Made by a program: the position numbers and the translations under genes
Shown: positions 55,398 to 64,000 of the stretch, piece by piece
How positions within the stretch are numbered: the first letter of the stretch is position 1
Layout: the number at the start of each line of letters is the position of its first letter
Assembly: GCA_024704765.1 (NCBI GenBank)
Contig: JAKMXF010000066.1
Coordinates: forward strand, 124,001 to 188,000
Reading direction: 5' to 3'
DNA from: Oopsacas minuta
Lineage: Eukaryota; Animalia; Porifera
Length of the DNA stretch: 64,000 nt
Notes under the pieces: generated by a model
What the model saw: only the letters and a program-made list of their open reading frames with translations
What the model was told of the DNA's origin: nothing
The model's database searches: none

Positions 55398-58300
55398 CAG
55401 TGGTTTAAAAGGGCAGTTAGTAAAGAATAGCTATTTTGGTGTAAGATAGCCATATGAAATGTATTATTTACATATAGATTATTATATATAAGGAACCAAT
55501 ACATCTTGTCATAACAAGTATATGGCCTAAAATTTCCAAGTTATGACGTCATTGATATATGTGAAATTTTAAATTTTCTTCAATAAATACATTTTACTCG
55601 ACTTTATTGCCATGAAATATATTAATTACATATGGGTTATCCGTATTTGGCCATCACCTTGAACTTAAAATTTTGTTGTAGGGCTTGTATTTATAGAGTT
55701 ATGACGTCACACATATGATGGAATTTATCTTATTGATTTACAAAATATACATTATATTCATACTTAAGTTCATGATAGGCAATTTGTATTGGAGGTTAAG
55801 GTCGTGAATAAAGTCTGCATACTAGTTTTCTGATTGTTCATAGCATTGCAGCATTTAGATCTCGTTGTGTGTCCAGATTGACCACATCGTTCACAAGTCA
55901 AAATTCTTCGATGGTTGACTAAGGTTGGATCACTTTGAGAGGTTAATCTGACGAAGATATCCATAATATTGGTCTCAAAACTAACTTTACGAGCTAAATT
56001 CTCCCGATATTTTCTAACTAATTTGTTGCATGATTCTGTGCCTTCTTCTGAAAATGCCTTTAAGCCATAGCTAGAATTCGACTCACGTATTAACTCCTCG
56101 GAATGGGCCAAGAGCTTGTGCAGGGTTGGAGTCATGCTAGCCCAGGGGAAAGAATCTAAGATCACAAGGTAGGTATCCTTGCACAATTTCCCCAATTCCA
56201 AAGTGTTAACTTTGTGACTTGAATTGAAAACCCGAAGAATGGCTGAAAGCTGAGTATGTATCTTTGATAAGATTGGGCGATATTTTATTGCTACAGTTGA
56301 TAGAATGCATTCAAGGTATTCAGTTTCATCAGAAAAGGCTCTTCTAGCAACATTCCCTGTTGAGGTGGTTCCACCGCTAGAATTAGGCTGGTCAACCTTT
56401 AATCCTGTCTTCTCCTGAATAAATGTTTGAAGGAATTTCATTGACTCCTTGATAACTGGTGAAGTTGGGGACCAGGTAAACTTTTCGATGCGAAGATGAT
56501 ATACCAGCAAATTGAACCACCTAAAATTGGTTTAATTATGTGAAGATAAATTCTGAATGATTAATGGAGTACAAGATTACTTACCTAAATACGCCTGCGT
56601 ATGAATGAAGTGGAGATGCTGGATGTATGTTAATCTCTTAAATTGGTTGATGAGTTAAATTGAAGCGTTCATTAGTCGAAAGAGCAAAGAACGACTCAAA
56701 GTCATCAATGTGCGAAAATAACTCGATTGCATCTGTGATATTTCTGTTGATGGGGAACCCTTCAAGAACTAAATTCCGGTCCTTCAAATCTTTATGTGTG
56801 GGAGTGCACATCTGACAACTGGCTCCTCCAGCTCCAGAGAGAATGGCTGCCATCTTCCCGTCAAACATTGAGCGGATAATATCGACATTGACAACACCAT
56901 TTCTAAAGGAATCCCATTTTGCAACATCGCTGTATCGGGATTAATCATAGTTTCCATGAAGGAACGAATATTTTCTTCGCATTCTGTCGCAGCGCAGAGA
57001 AAAATAGGTCTTTGAGAGAAGGGTGAATTAGGGGATTTATTCTGCCAAACAATCCTGTTTGTTACTGTGTGGATGGAGATGGGCTTGAAACGAAACGGAA
57101 TGAAGTTTTTGGTGAAAGTATTAGTTGTCTGCTGGTTGTAGATAGTGTGACAACCAGAACCATCTAAGCCATCTGCGATTTTAAATGTGAGTGGGAATTC
57201 TTCACTTGTGGGGCGATCTACCATTGACAATATTCTTTCCAGGGTTTTCTGAACTTGAAGAAAATATGGTGCGTGTATACCTATTGGTTTAGCTGGATTA
57301 GGGTATAAAGTTATACTGGATCCCGAAATCATGACATCTCTCAGATTAGCTAGCTTGCTGTAAGATGGGAAATGTATATTGTCTGGTAGAAGTGTTTGAC
57401 GTAGTTGAGTGTATTTTCGTCTGCCCACTTCAAGTAAATCCAGCAGGAATAAGGCTTTATCAACTGGAACATGCTTGTTACTGAGGTTACAGAATCCTCC
57501 GCTGACAATAATCTCTTTGGCTACAGTAGCAACCTGACGATTATTCTCCTCATTTGCCAATAGTTGTAATGAGAGTGCTGCAATGCTTATTTCTGTAGTA
57601 TTCTCAATAACTGAGAGTGACTTAATGCATTCTAGCAGACTTGACAATCGAATACGCTGTTGTTGCAGAGAGAGATCATCAAGATGCTTCCTATGACTCA
57701 CTGAATGAATGGGAACTTCACCATCATCAGAAGACGACTCTAGTAAATCAGAATCACGATTTTTCTTTAACTCAGGTTTCATGGAAATGTTAGAATGCCA
57801 CCATTCTCCTTCTAAACAATCTAAAGATCTCTTCGCCTTCTTGAATCTGTCCCGAATTCTTAACAGCAACGTTTCCAAGAGTTTCGTATTATCTGAGTCT
57901 ATTTCAAAGTGTTCTTTGAAATATTTTGTCGTTTTCAAGACACAATTATTATTGTCTTTCAGGATTCTTGCCAATTCAAGGCGGGACTTTGGGAAAGTTA
58001 ACTCTTCTGTCATTGTTTTCAAGAAATTCCGAAAAATATGTTGTATTATTCAGTAGATTATATATATATAGGTAAGTATAATAAATTTCAAGAACGAAAT
58101 TCAATACTATTTCATTCCATTGTTGTAGTATGCTACAATGGGAATTTCCTAGCAACGAAAAGTTGTAATGGAATGTCATTGAAAATTATAGGTTGCGCAC
58201 TGTTTCGGGTTTTGTGGTTTTAGATTATGTTTTTAGGAATCGTAATGTGTGCATCCGATTAATTTTGCGCTGTTGTTTTGTGTAGTTTATTTTTCCTGAC

Positions 58301-58688: not shown

Positions 58689-59261
58689 GTCTTATCTTTT
58701 CAGTTAACATATAATCTAGTAGAAATTTGGAATATCGTTATACTAGTTATTGGCGTATATACTGGTTTGACCAGCATATAGCTAGCCACATTGACATTAA
58801 ATGTAGACACTAAAGAATTGTACAAAACTAATAAACCAAGAGTGATTATCTACTTCAAGAAAAAGCCAGAGCAACTATGACGTCAATAAACTTAGAAATA
58901 GAGGCTTGTGTCAAATATCAGAAGAATTGTTCAAGATGTGAAAAAGGGACCTCGTCCCTAATTAACAGAATGGAATGGATAGGTTTTCTTAAAGAAATTT
59001 CAAATTTGTTGTTTGTTTCCATTTGCTGATATCCAAAGTATCTAAGTAATACCGCATGAACAACGTTTCATCATTCTAATCACGAATATTATATGAACCA
59101 ATAATACTTAATCCTATCGGGTCAAGGTCTGAAGGATGAAAAATGTAAAGAGAAAGAGAGAAGTTACAGTTTCAAGCAGTAGCAGAGTTGAAATCCGGTT
59201 GTGGTTTTTCGGCGGGTCTGATCGGGTTTTGAAAAGTGAACCCGATTCCAGAGGTATTAAA

Positions 59262-59342
59262 AAGTACTGTGCGCATGTCCATTAAGTACTGTGCGCATGT
59301 CCATTAAGTACTGTGCGCATGTCCATTAAGTACTGTGCGCAT
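59262..59342. repeat. Tandem repeat of a 22-bp unit AAGTACTGTGCGCATGTCCATT, 3 full copies plus 15 nt
   Basis: Exact repeats at 59262, 59284 and 59306, partial at 59328; ends about 145 bp before the ATG at 59486. Confidence 0.95.
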
Positions 59343-59485
59343 AGGGATTCATGTACCATAGTAGGCGTATATTATACAGATTAATTTTATTAGACTGCTT
59401 TTCAGATCTCAGTTATTCACTCTAGTAATCAGTCTACCAGTCTAGATGAATACTTTCTTACTATAATTTGTTCAAATTAGCTGGA

Positions 59486-61414
59486 ATGCCTCGTATTACC
59501 AAGGGCAACGCTAGAGAGCATTTAGCTAAAGCGATTGCAACGTTTACAAAGGTAACGGGAGAATCTGTAGGGGTTGTCTACTCCTGGAGGGGACAATTAT
59601 CAGTTCTGGGAAGCGATACTTACCAGCAGCATGTTGCTGAAACGAAAGAACAAATTTGGCGAAGCTTAACATTTGAACGCTCTGTGATCGGAGACTCATC
59701 AGTTGTTCGAGATGATTATAAAGAAGATGAAATGATGGACCTGATGAAACAAGATCCACACACACATAATGTCCAGGCGTTAAGAAAGATTTTATCATGG
59801 GGAACTCAAAAGATGAACAGTAAGTTTCTTGTTTTTCTTACCCTTAGTTTTGGAAGCCACCCTTTGTTGTTATTTCGTGGGTACAGGGTATGTACTGCTA
59901 TTGAAACAAATTGGTATGTAATACTTAAGTAAGTAATAATTTGGTAATACGTATATCATATTTTAATTGTAGGAAAACCGCGTAATTTTGGGGGGAAAAG
60001 TGAACTCCGGCCAATATTTTGGCCCAAGGAAATTCCATTTCTCAAGCAATCAAAGAATATGGGCAGAACTACTTTGCTATCTGTTATCAAATCGATGCGC
60101 GAATACTTTTCTCCAGATCTATCTGATAGTTTTAGAGACAGGTCACCTATACATTTATCAAAAGAAGATTGTTTAGATTCAGACTTGGATGACGGGAATA
60201 TATATAATCCAACTTATCATTCACCTTCCTCTCCGAATTCCAATGTGGAAATATCTCTAAATACTTCTCCAGAGAAATGCCCATCGTCTCCACTATATCT
60301 TGGTGAATCGATCCATTCAACACCAAATACCATATCAGAACAGCAACCCGATCACTCACCCTTTACTTCCCCTCAGTCTCTTTTGGATACATCTGTAGTT
60401 TCAATGGCAGGATTATCAGCAGCAAAGGCTTTAATTCCATTAAATGTAACATTTGTGAGAATTTTAGACGAAAAAGTAAGGGATGACTGTCTTAAAGAGC
60501 TATCGAATGACAAAACCTTTCTTAGTGATGTGACTATCAACGCCTTTGGGGTAAGCTCTCTCTATGATTTAATTATATTATATTTCAATACCATTTATAA
60601 CCTACGTTCGCACTTCGCTTCGACAAACAACTAAACAACTTTTACCAGGTTACTTAATAAATTATGTTTAGGTTTTGATAAAGAATAATTATCCAGACAT
60701 TGAAGGATTCCAGGATACTATTTTATCTAAGGTAAATCTATTATTTTGCTTATTTTATCATCCTGAAAATAATTGGCATTTCAAATTGCATGTCTTTTAT
60801 CTTGTTAGAATCGCCAATTTGTTAGAGCAGCACTAAATAGTTTTCAAATACACCACGATGGTAAACTACACTGGAAAGTGTCTAGGATTGGCGATGAAGG
60901 AAATATATCAGTATATGATTCGTTATTAATCCGGGGTCTAAGTGAAGAGCTGGACATCCAACTTGCACTGCTTTATCGAAGCGAGACTGAAGATTTAAAA
61001 GTTACAGTTCAAGAGCTACAACAACAAAGAGGGATTTCAGATTGTGGTGTCTTTGCTATTGTAGTTAGTATCGCGTTGGCGAATGGTTTAGAACCAAGTA
61101 TATTGAGATGGAACCAGGGCAATATGAGACGTCACCTGCGTAATTTCATTATTTCTGAAAAATTATCACCCCTGCCTACAATTTCTGAAAGACTCTGTTC
61201 ACGGATAAAGGTTAATAAGAAGTTGGAATATACAATTGAACTTTGGTGTATTTGTCGTCTACCCGAGTTCGCTTTCAAGAATATGGTGAATTGTCAAGTG
61301 TGTACCCAATGGTTTCACAAACCATGTGTTGGCCTACAGGATATTACACAAAAGGTTTCCTCGTTCATTTGTAAAAGTTGTAACAGCAAAAAGAGTTTAG
61401 TAAAGATACTATAA
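59486..61414 (+). CDS. NRF1/EWG-like DNA-binding domain + S/P-rich linker + Ulp1/C48-like cysteine protease + PHD finger; 525 aa, 4 exons: 59486-59819, 59973-60550, 60672-60731, 60809-61414
   Basis: GT-AG introns (phases 1, 0, 0) join the ORF-track fragments into one 1578-nt frame with no stop. RKPRNFGGKSELRPIFWPKEIPF recalls NRF1 RGKPGWGKESCKPIWWPEDIPW; protease motifs LHW, VYDS and QQQRGISDCGVFA; PHD WCIC...MVNCQVCTQWFHKPCVG...FICKSC. Confidence 0.85.
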
Positions 61415-61424
61415 AGTATACTTG

Positions 61425-63203
61425 TTAATTATCTAGAGTGTCATTTGATGGGGAAGCCTCTACTGCCTTCCGTCCTTCTCTATAGTTATTGAGTAATTCA
61501 ATCTTGGATAGAATAGCCCTTAGAACACCAGCAAGAATAGGATGAAGGGTGAATCCTGTACCAGTAGTACATTGTTCTTTAACTTCACCAAACGAGCTAA
61601 GGAATAGCCTTAGAGTATGCATTTTTTCAAAAATCTCATAAACAGACATGTATCAATTTGGTTACCACAAGAGAGACTAGCAATAGCTTTATTCTCGCAC
61701 TCGCTAAGGATAGAAACAGGAAAAATGCCAGAAATAGGTTCTGATCTGGAGAATAGTTCCATAATAGCTTTAGCATTTGGATAAGTCGGATTAATCACAT
61801 TGACCTCATCAATTACATTGTTAGCGTAAATAATGTACTCTGTAATTTCTTCAAACTCTAAAGAATTGACCATGGTGTGAAACTCGCTTTCACCCAATCC
61901 AAATGAATAGTAACTTTTGATCAATTTTCTGGTTTTTAGATCAGATACCAATACCCTGTTTGATAATGGGACAAACGATAACCTCTGATCTTCCAGGTAT
62001 TCTTCAACTGTATTCGGGAGTTCCTTAATTGTCCCCATTGTTATACCATCCATAATTAAGAATTCTGGAGCTTCTTGGCATAATGGGCAAATATAGCTTG
62101 TCTTATAGTTAATGTCTAACATACGTAAGTACCCATTCCATCCATGCTGTAGTATATGATAACTGAAGGTGAGTTCCCTTCCCATTCTCTCAAATTTATT
62201 ATTCTTTGCTCTAAATACAATAAAGAGTAACCAGATCAACTTTCTAAAATGAATTTGATTTAATTGGTTATATAATTATGACTACCGACCGTAATAGATC
62301 ACTTTCAATCGATATGTATTTCTTTTGTTATTTTGGTATTCGATTGAGTACATAACCAACGGACAAAAAGTATCTAAAATACATACCTCATGTATCCATG
62401 TAGTGTATTCCGAGACATCGTCATAAACTCGCTGTATTCAAATAATACTCCATAGTGGATGAAATAGCGATTGTTGACATTCAGCAGTAAATATTTATTT
62501 CCTTCAAACACAGAGGTGCATTTACAACTTCCTTCACAAGTGGATGTATACACTAAAAATTGGGTAAATAAGCTAGCTTGAATATTAAACGACAAATAAA
62601 AATATATACTATGTAGTATATAATTAAATAACATACCTGTATGTTCTTTTAAATCGAGGACATCATTTTCTGTGTATATAATGATTCCCTTTTTTGCTAC
62701 GACTAGACTTTTGGCAACATATTTATGTCCTTGCTCACAATGCAAAATATCTGGTTCAAGATTTGGGGGTAGAAATAATCCTCGTCTTAACTGTCCATTA
62801 TATATAATGGCCTGGTTCTTACTAAGTTTAAAAGGAAGATATTGTTTAGATATGGTAGAATAATCAAGAGGTTTCTGAGGAACGGGTAACTGATCATTGT
62901 ATTCTGCCATGATTGCCTGTAGAATTAACTTTTCTTGACACATACTACTACAATTGTCGCAATACCACTTCATTTCTTTCCTATATAGGCAATGATAGCC
63001 ATTCTTCAGCAAAAAAATTGTATTTGCACCTAATGTGTAGTAAGTACTGCCAGCATGGGATTTGGATTCGGAATTGTTTAAGGTTCGGAATTCCAAACAC
63101 AATTCATATGCTTGATAATGTGTGCAAGAATTCGTATGACAAGACAAGCATTTCATCAGACAAGTTTCGATCAAAACTTTTTTCTTGGTTAATATTACTT
63201 CAC
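61425..63203 (-). pseudogene. KDZ/Zisupton (HMGXB3-related) transposase remnant, spliced, frameshifted near 61650 and 3'-truncated; probably extends 5' beyond 63203
   Basis: Exons 63203-62637, 62552-62387 and 62243 onward join in frame via GT-AG introns. SWIM-like CLSCHTNSCTH, Cys clusters (CEGSCKC) and YICPLCQEAPEFLIMDG resemble the CxC-to-first-Asp region of KDZ transposases; later catalytic motifs are absent. Confidence 0.65.
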
Positions 63204-64000
63204 CTAGAAAATGAAAACACGAATTGAAACACTATAGGATCTGGGAGTACATTTTTCGAATGTTGTGTGCAAATGATTACAAGGCTGCCAAGCAGCGTTT
63301 GATAAAATTGAATACATGGTAGCTAACTTAGCCACCACCTCGCCTAACTAGGCTAAATTCTTTGGTGGCTTAAGGAAAAAAGCTACGGATTTATCGGGAA
63401 TGCTGCCAAGATGTGTAATATAGTATTATGGATTTGTTCGCAGTTGAATTAAATCTATATTATTTAATCTCAATTGTTTTTTGTCCGTTGAATACCCCGA
63501 GGCGCAATGCGGCGATTTCATCGCGAAGCGACGAGCCAAAGGCTCGTATACTTGTATAGCATTAGGCTCTGTTCTGATTCGAGGTTCGGATTAGCGAGGG
63601 TCACTGTAGTTACATATAGGTGTCATACCATTGATTACTTCAAAATCTGACATGAATACTACAGAGCAATCTTGCAAACGCCAAGCCTTCTGTTTATCAG
63701 CAAGCAGATGTACATATTGATATAGTATTGGAATAGTTAGCTCTTCTTGTGAAAAGATTTCAGTGTATACTTCTTTCTTGGGATGACCTAAAAAAGTATA
63801 TTAGGTAGTGTCGTGTTAAATAGTATAACATTCCATGGAAATGGGCCTTTTCAATACGTAACTTACTTGGTACAACTTCAAACTGCTCTTCTGATATTGT
63901 GATATCTACTGGCGAAACATTTGTCTTCGAAATTTCAATTCCTCCAATGTTGAGGGTTGTTGCAGTAATGTCAAATTTCTCCTCAACTATTCTTCGTTTC

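Follow-up and report, generated by a model that had tools for sequence, protein, structure and literature searches.

The tandem array described here is the left terminal repeat of a young two-gene DNA transposon of the KDZ/Zisupton type (superfamily Kyakuja-Dileera-Zisupton) in the glass sponge Oopsacas minuta. It lies in a 64-kb stretch of contig JAKMXF010000066.1 (64,000 nucleotides, hereafter the window). The element is 5.1-6.1 kb long and is found at several loci with differing flanks and differing target-site duplications. It contains two convergent genes, each of which starts near one end just inside an array. One encodes an NRF1-like/Ulp1-like/PHD protein and the other encodes a KDZ transposase. 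The element probably encodes a protein that recognises its own ends. We hold with moderate confidence that a dimer of the NRF1-like protein binds the terminal arrays and marks the ends, and that it possibly regulates the genes of the element.

Terminal arrays and boundaries of the element

In the window, Tandem Repeats Finder reports the array with a period of 22, 3.7 copies, 100% matches and a score of 162, the highest among the tandem repeats of the 64 kb. The unit, AAGTACTGTGCGCATGTCCATT, has three exact occurrences in the window, all of which are in the array. Outside the array there are no further copies in the 64-kb window at three or fewer mismatches, and there are 0 matches across 100 shuffles. 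When the whole window is searched, TGCGCATG is confined to 59270, 59292 and 59314. The preliminary description assigned a near-NRF1 12-mer to each 22-bp unit. This is true of the three full units, which hold TGCGCATGTCCA, and not of the fourth, partial unit, which reads TGCGCATAGGGA. Its remaining statements about the array are borne out: TGCGCATGTCCA matches the NRF1 palindrome TGCGCATGCGCA at 10 of 12 positions, each unit contains one perfect half, and the gap from the array end to the ATG, given there as about 145 bp, is 143 bp.

The site in the window unit is GCGCATGTCC. One TGCGC half-site is intact in it; of the other, which is degenerate in the window's subfamily (TGTCC versus TGCGC), just the TG is kept. 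The full two-half-site GCGCATGCGC palindrome is absent from the window's unit. GCGC is uncommon in the window (42 sites in 64 kb) because the sequence is AT-rich (34.5% G+C). From the base composition, we estimate the chance of GCGCATG on either strand of one 22-bp unit at about 5e-4.

The boundaries of the element were placed by comparison with two further loci, L001 and L002, which are the flanked loci of P0067 and P0075 (96%-identical paralogs), and with the window's own contig (L003). L001 and L002 share 6.1 kb bounded by arrays, with the 22-bp units inverted at the far end. Homology between these loci and the window begins exactly at 59251, and the same 11-mer is present at the left end of all three copies (Table 1). 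The window copy is 5,149 bp long, and its array starts 11 bp inside the left terminus. An inverted partner of the array was not found within the window. On the contig, the right end lies 399 bp past the last base of the window, where three inverted units are followed by the tip CATATATTAAA and then by CGATTCCA. This right copy of CGATTCCA is at L003 14915-14922, equivalent to window positions 64400-64407.

Table 1. Features of the window copy of the element (window coordinates)
Feature	Position	Strand	Description
Target-site duplication, left copy	59243..59250		8 bp, CGATTCCA; repeated right after the right terminus
Outermost left terminus	59251..59261	+	11 bp, GAGGTATTAAA
Terminal array	59262..59342	+	three perfect 22-bp units and a fourth unit that diverges after TGCGCAT
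Spacer from array to ATG	59343..59485	+	143 bp
NRF1-like gene	59486..61414	+	four exons, 525 aa; NRF1-like region (about residues 1-160), Ulp1/SENP-like cysteine protease core, C-terminal PHD finger
KDZ transposase gene	61415..64000	-	convergent; cut by the window end

The terminal inverted repeats consist of the 11-bp tip and the arrays of 22-bp units, which are inverted at both ends. The right-end tips of the window copy, L001 and L002 are all CATATATTAAA. Left and right tips are unlike in their first six bases (GAGGTA versus CATATA). The left end has four units in the window copy versus six in L001 and L002, and the right end has three units in the window copy and three to four in the other two. 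Each of the three copies is flanked by a perfect 8-bp duplication: CGATTCCA for the window copy and CCAAAATC and CGATAAAG for L001 and L002. The copies are 97.7-98% identical across most of their length. This identity, together with the intact duplications, points to recent activity of the element. Duplications of 8 bp are also reported for Zisupton (PMC12730594). A TTAA or TA target duplication was considered for the copies examined and rejected. The GAGGTA and CATATA sequences outside the TTAA are conserved in every copy and subfamily, and the perfect 8-bp repeats lie outside them.

The inverted arrays at both ends, the 8-bp duplications and the partner gene with PF18758 identify the array as the terminal repeat of a KDZ-type transposon. 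One of the two readings offered in the preliminary description, subterminal binding sites of a mobile element, is structurally right, as inverted arrays at both ends and 8-bp duplications are found in every copy examined; the binding itself is putative. The same description would have given way to an unrelated genome-wide minisatellite. The 22-mer is indeed multi-copy, but as the end of a KDZ element.

The bin that contains the array has a contig depth about 7-20 times that of its neighbours in runs X1-X3 and about level with them in X4. Contig depth is not copy number, and these values give a hint that ends outnumber element interiors. Judged from position, the NRF1-like gene would have both its promoter and its 5' UTR in the stretch from the terminus to the ATG; the alternative is read-through from outside.

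The insertion site (59220-59247) is a small hairpin-forming sequence, ATCGGGTT (10 nt) AACCCGAT, and the duplication CGATTCCA overlaps its 3' arm. Directly upstream, at 55770-58022 (L003 7299-8528), a gene on the minus strand encodes a product that weakly matches RAG1_RNase_H (PF26100). An earlier note read this gene as part of a Transib/RAG1-like element, and the KDZ element is inserted about 560 bp from the noted end of that element.

The two genes

The exons of the NRF1-like gene are at 59486-59819, 59973-60550, 60672-60731 and 60809-61414. Its product is identical to P0077 (KAI6659012.1 of Oopsacas minuta, from the same contig). Contigs from run X4 join 59819-59973, 60550-60672 and 60731-60809, which are all three introns, with GT..AG ends. 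Spliced forms of the NRF1-like gene family are therefore present in run X4. These joints were taken at 80% likeness and may stem from sister copies, the library type of X4 is not on record, and contigs of this kind cannot show transcription starts.

The last exon contains a PHD finger (PF00628) at 29 bits versus a Pfam cutoff of 24. In the middle region, a family profile searched against the PDB is most similar to SENP1 (E = 0.006), and all seven matches are SENP or Ulp1. The Pfam C48 matches of the paralogs, at 18.6 and 15 bits, are below the cutoff. H, D, Q and C are invariant in the alignment of the protease core (A3).

When the exons were scanned separately, the N-terminal region had no Pfam or PDB match and no usable protein atlas match. 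An exhaustive search with exon 1 returned 63 relatives, nearly all of which are exon-sized fragments, and no canonical NRF1 is among them. The NRF1-like domain is visible only through full-length paralogs and not through the separate exons of the window gene. Three Oopsacas paralogs pass the PF10491 cutoff of 23.5 bits (P0024 and P0069 at 25.4 bits each and P0068 at 24.4 bits). P0067, which represents the window's subfamily and is 96% identical to the window protein, scores 14.8 bits (E = 0.024) versus this cutoff. A profile of eight family members matches the NRF1 structures 8k3d_A (E = 6.1e-6) and 8k4l_A (E = 9.8e-6), and the next match is at 0.55.

The predicted fold gives a similar placement. 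In an AlphaFold2 model of residues 1-175 (mean pLDDT 68), the top match is the NRF1 homodimer 8k4l, with middling scores in both Foldseek (E = 0.03) and VIA-align (Z 6.2, rmsd 7.4, 127 residues aligned). MADS domains come next, at Z 5.2-5.9. This ranking agrees with the NRF1 structure paper, in which SRF is the nearest fold to NRF1 itself (PMC10810270). NRF1 kinship is accepted at the family level on these profile and model matches, and the window's subfamily is placed as a putative divergent member. The label NRF1-like that the preliminary description gave to the gene is thus sound for the family (PF10491 in paralogs, the profile match and the fold) and for its own subfamily the Pfam score falls short of the cutoff.

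NRF1 dimers bind GCGCATGCGC, and the DNA-binding domain alone binds a TGCGC half-site (PMC10810270). In the structure of NRF1 on DNA, the TG of each TGCGC half-site (the central CATG) is read by R206, and the outer CGC by N242 and R244 (PMC10810270). The equivalent of R206 is R100 in the transposon family and is nearly invariant. The residues aligned to N242 and R244 are not conserved in the window's subfamily, which reads LKQSKN versus ANVRSD.

The convergent gene differs between the window copy and its relatives. BLAST alignments show that the window copy is without 829 bp that are present in L001 and L002, with a junction near 61426-61430. The products at L001 and L002 carry PF18758 (KDZ), and one exon frame of L001 has E = 0.001. 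Among the L001 reading frames tested, the sole Pfam KDZ match is at L001:12347-12637 on the minus strand, inside the stretch that is missing from the window copy. The product annotated at L003 has no Pfam match. PF18758 is a feature of the family and not of the window's own copy. Because the 829-bp loss covers the only frame with a Pfam KDZ match, the window copy consists of an intact partner gene and a broken transposase. Such a copy could move only with transposase supplied by another copy.

X4 contigs also have minus-strand joints across the transposase gene at 62210-62387 and 62552-62637 (both CT..AC) and at 63785-63866. Joints are thus present on both strands, and therefore spliced forms of both genes of the element family are present in the X4 contigs, a run whose library type is not on record. 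Within the transposase-gene region, about 55 bp (63492-63547) have a contig depth of 41,000-349,000 versus about 1,000 around them, and dozens of contigs break at 63480/63492 and 63545-63550. This segment resembles a short repeat of very high copy number that sits within the element. A further stretch of about 57 bp (63373-63429) is present in the window copy and absent from L001 and L002, and in contigs that stem from other copies, 63 bp are missing at 63365-63429.

Ends of the related subfamilies

The window copy, L001 and L002 belong to subfamily A. In subfamily A' (L008), the coding DNA is 66-68% identical to that of the window's element and exon 1 is 59% identical at the protein level. 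The unit is the same at 21 of 22 positions, the ends are 84-90% identical, and the target duplication matches at 7 of 8 positions. Subfamily B (P0066, P0068 and P0069; loci L004-L006) has 25-29% identity in the N-terminal domain. Its tips are of the same type, accompanied by a single unit at the end near the gene and two 23-bp units at the opposite end, and a perfect GCGCATGCGC is present in each unit at both ends. In L006, only 7 bases of the duplication are in register.

Subfamily C rests on one decayed copy, L007, which has GCCATGCGC at the corresponding place; its protein, P0065, is 84% identical to P0024. Its full-length members are P0064 and P0024, whose N-terminal domains share 31-33% identity with that of the window; these two were not located on contigs. 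Subfamily D (L009, 33% identity) is represented by a complete element with a perfect 8-bp duplication, AAATCTAA, the tips GAGGTAACAAA and CATATAACAAA, and 7-8 units of AAGTACACAGATCATGATCGTAAG per end. The D unit opens with the same AAGTAC and its palindrome is GATCATGATC, so that the 4-AT-4 shape is kept, and the termini of D are of the same kind. Subfamilies A', D and E come from the ENA assemblies ERZ20067936 and ERZ25071281, for which the species is Oopsacas or another, and L008 and L009 are in different assemblies. A sixth homolog, L010, has a 22-bp array of 2.7 copies with a perfect 12-mer TGCGCATGCGCA about 390 bp upstream. Relative to the homolog, this array is in the reverse orientation, and no complete element was delimited, so L010 adds little to the comparison.

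The preliminary description proposed a search for GCGCAT arrays upstream of homologous genes elsewhere. The GCGC motif is present at the ends of L001, L002, A' and B. Subfamily D departs from this and carries GATCATGATC. Across the family, the palindromes are GCGC-AT-GCGC, GATC-AT-GATC and GCGC-AT-GTCC. The central CATG is constant across subfamilies. For the outer triplets, B has CGC, D has ATC, and A has CGC/TCC. With these differences go differences at the positions that align to N242 and R244: subfamilies B and C have N and K there, D has S and R, and A and A' have K/Q and S/K. This covariation, drawn from four to six subfamilies whose ends share ancestry and whose loop alignments are short, is suggestive of what a co-evolving, element-encoded dimeric binder would produce, and not of a conserved host factor. 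Because the subfamily ends descend from a common ancestor, the shared motif is not fully independent evidence. The preliminary description also held that its motif call and its domain call support each other, and this link appears stronger now that diverged subfamilies are seen with a perfect GCGCATGCGC or a re-specified GATCATGATC palindrome.

The tip on the side of the NRF1-like gene is of the GAGGTA type in L001-L003 and of the CATATA type in L008, L009 and L006. Either the ends or the internal segment appear to have swapped orientation between subfamilies. In the D copy, a satellite of 69 copies of a 31-bp unit (L009 5759-7903) has expanded in the interval that separates the left terminal array from the NRF1-like gene, and its unit holds the palindrome TGAC(A/T)GTCA. 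At L004 15096-16470, a Tc1/mariner-like element with 38-nt inverted arms and a product with DDE_3 abuts the right end of a subfamily B copy. The annotation at L004 merges this element with the subfamily B copy.

Proposed recognition of the ends

In the proposed mechanism, which draws on the motif-domain match and its covariation among subfamilies, the NRF1-like protein would bind, as a dimer like NRF1, to the GCGCATG-centred site in each unit. The units are 22-24 bp apart, or about two helical turns, and bound dimers would be aligned on one face of each end. Lined up in this way, the dimers may flag the two ends to the KDZ transposase and assist in pairing them, much like the Myb-like partner in PIF/Harbinger or TnpA in En/Spm. 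The same binding could feed back on transcription of both genes, since both start just inside an array.

We consider it unlikely that the KDZ transposase itself binds the arrays, with the NRF1-like/Ulp1/PHD protein doing other work (on chromatin or SUMO at the excision or insertion site) and the likeness to NRF1 sites being coincidental. Most cut-and-paste transposases bind their own inverted repeats, and the whole 22-mer is conserved between A and A', beyond GCGCATG. Neither the conserved AAGTAC nor the 11-bp tip resembles an NRF1 site. KDZ transposases have zinc-chelating CxC modules of their own, which are proposed to read DNA (cited in PMC12062965). Against these points, a coincidental GCGCATG in a 22-bp unit has the low chance estimated above, and the motif or a palindrome of the same shape is found in five further subfamilies, all of which encode an NRF1-like domain. 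The shape of the palindrome also suits a dimeric binder of the NRF1 type (PMC10810270).

Recruitment of host NRF1 to the arrays, which would drive both genes by promoter hijacking and leave the element's own protein a competitor at most, is more improbable still. An array precedes each gene, with 143 bp to the NRF1-like ATG in the window and about 400-470 bp to the KDZ ATG in L001, and sites for NRF1 typically lie close to promoters. The consensus in subfamily B is a perfect one of the host type. However, subfamily D has swapped its GCGC half-sites for GATC with the array design kept, and the second half-site is degenerate in the window's subfamily. Such drift fits a co-evolving binder encoded by the element and not a conserved host factor.

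We give very little credence to a host gene with a private, autoregulatory near-NRF1 array and no link to mobility, which is the autoregulation reading of the preliminary description taken by itself. The position of the array upstream of the ATG, the intact gene and the spliced forms in the X4 contigs would all be expected of such a gene, but several loci have a 5.1-6.1 kb unit with this array in inverted form at its far end, the flanks and duplications differ from locus to locus, and the differing 8-bp duplications exclude an origin of these loci by segmental duplication. Least credible is a functionless young minisatellite from replication slippage, which would account for perfectly identical units and their variable number (left 4 versus 6, right 3 versus 4) but not for arrays that are always inverted at both termini or for a unit kept at 21 of 22 positions between subfamilies with coding DNA 66-68% identical.

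Recognition of the arrays by the element's own NRF1-like protein would place the element beside several known systems. The Zisupton/KDZ superfamily of DNA transposons was reportedly described by Bohne et al. in 2012 and Iyer et al. in 2014. The Oopsacas element shares with it the KDZ transposase (PF18758), terminal inverted repeats and 8-bp target-site duplications. It differs in its second, convergent gene (NRF1-like/Ulp1-like/PHD), in inverted repeats made of tandem 22-24-bp units centred on an NRF1-type palindrome, and in its glass sponge host. Zisupton is the one KDZ element that is well characterised, in that its ends and duplications are defined (PMC12730594).

The Myb-like protein of PIF/Harbinger and TnpA of En/Spm bind repeats near the ends of their elements. 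If the proposed binding holds, the Oopsacas element would be alike in that a separate element-encoded DNA-binding protein recognises repeats near both ends and brings the transposase. The transposase superfamily and the DNA-binding fold are unrelated, and the putative Oopsacas binder carries a protease core and a PHD finger in the same protein. Families related to Harbinger have a gene for a Myb/SANT partner (PMC12730594). By this analogy, the arrangement would resemble a two-protein principle that is already known from PIF/Harbinger. A search of the literature, which included the Pfam family name, found no description of KDZ/Zisupton combined with NRF1 or with Ulp1/protease.

The likeness to NRF1/EWG/P3A2 (8K3D, 8K4L; PMC10810270) covers the region for dimerisation and DNA binding, as seen in the profile match (E = 6e-6) and in the predicted fold, the arginine that corresponds to R206, and a DNA site that is a 4-AT-4 palindrome around CATG. 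Unlike these factors, the protein is encoded by a transposon and is without the N-terminal extension or activation domain, and its C-terminal part is a protease and PHD finger. In the window's subfamily, the equivalents of N242 and R244 are changed, and the site has one intact half-site and is tandemly repeated. A doubtful but conceivable extension is that an NRF1-type binder of the transposon co-evolved with the array palindromes and that animal NRF1/EWG would be its domesticated descendant, not its donor.

Little is known of end recognition by KDZ/Zisupton elements, and proteins with Ulp1-type proteases ride in several transposon superfamilies. In the Oopsacas element, the sequence of the ends and a DNA-binding fold of solved structure each suggest the other, and the natural subfamilies are a ready-made specificity-swap set of GCGC versus GATC half-sites. 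If the binding is true, the element would supply a defined accessory end-binding protein for the KDZ superfamily, a natural series for specificity change in an NRF1-type domain, and a concrete candidate for an evolutionary link between NRF1/EWG factors and mobile elements.

In the older or inner units of L001 and L002 (9720-9855 in each) and at both ends of L008, GCGC has changed to GTGC, GTAC or ATGC. This is the pattern expected of deamination of methylated CpG, and it suggests a decay that would destroy the putative binding sites.
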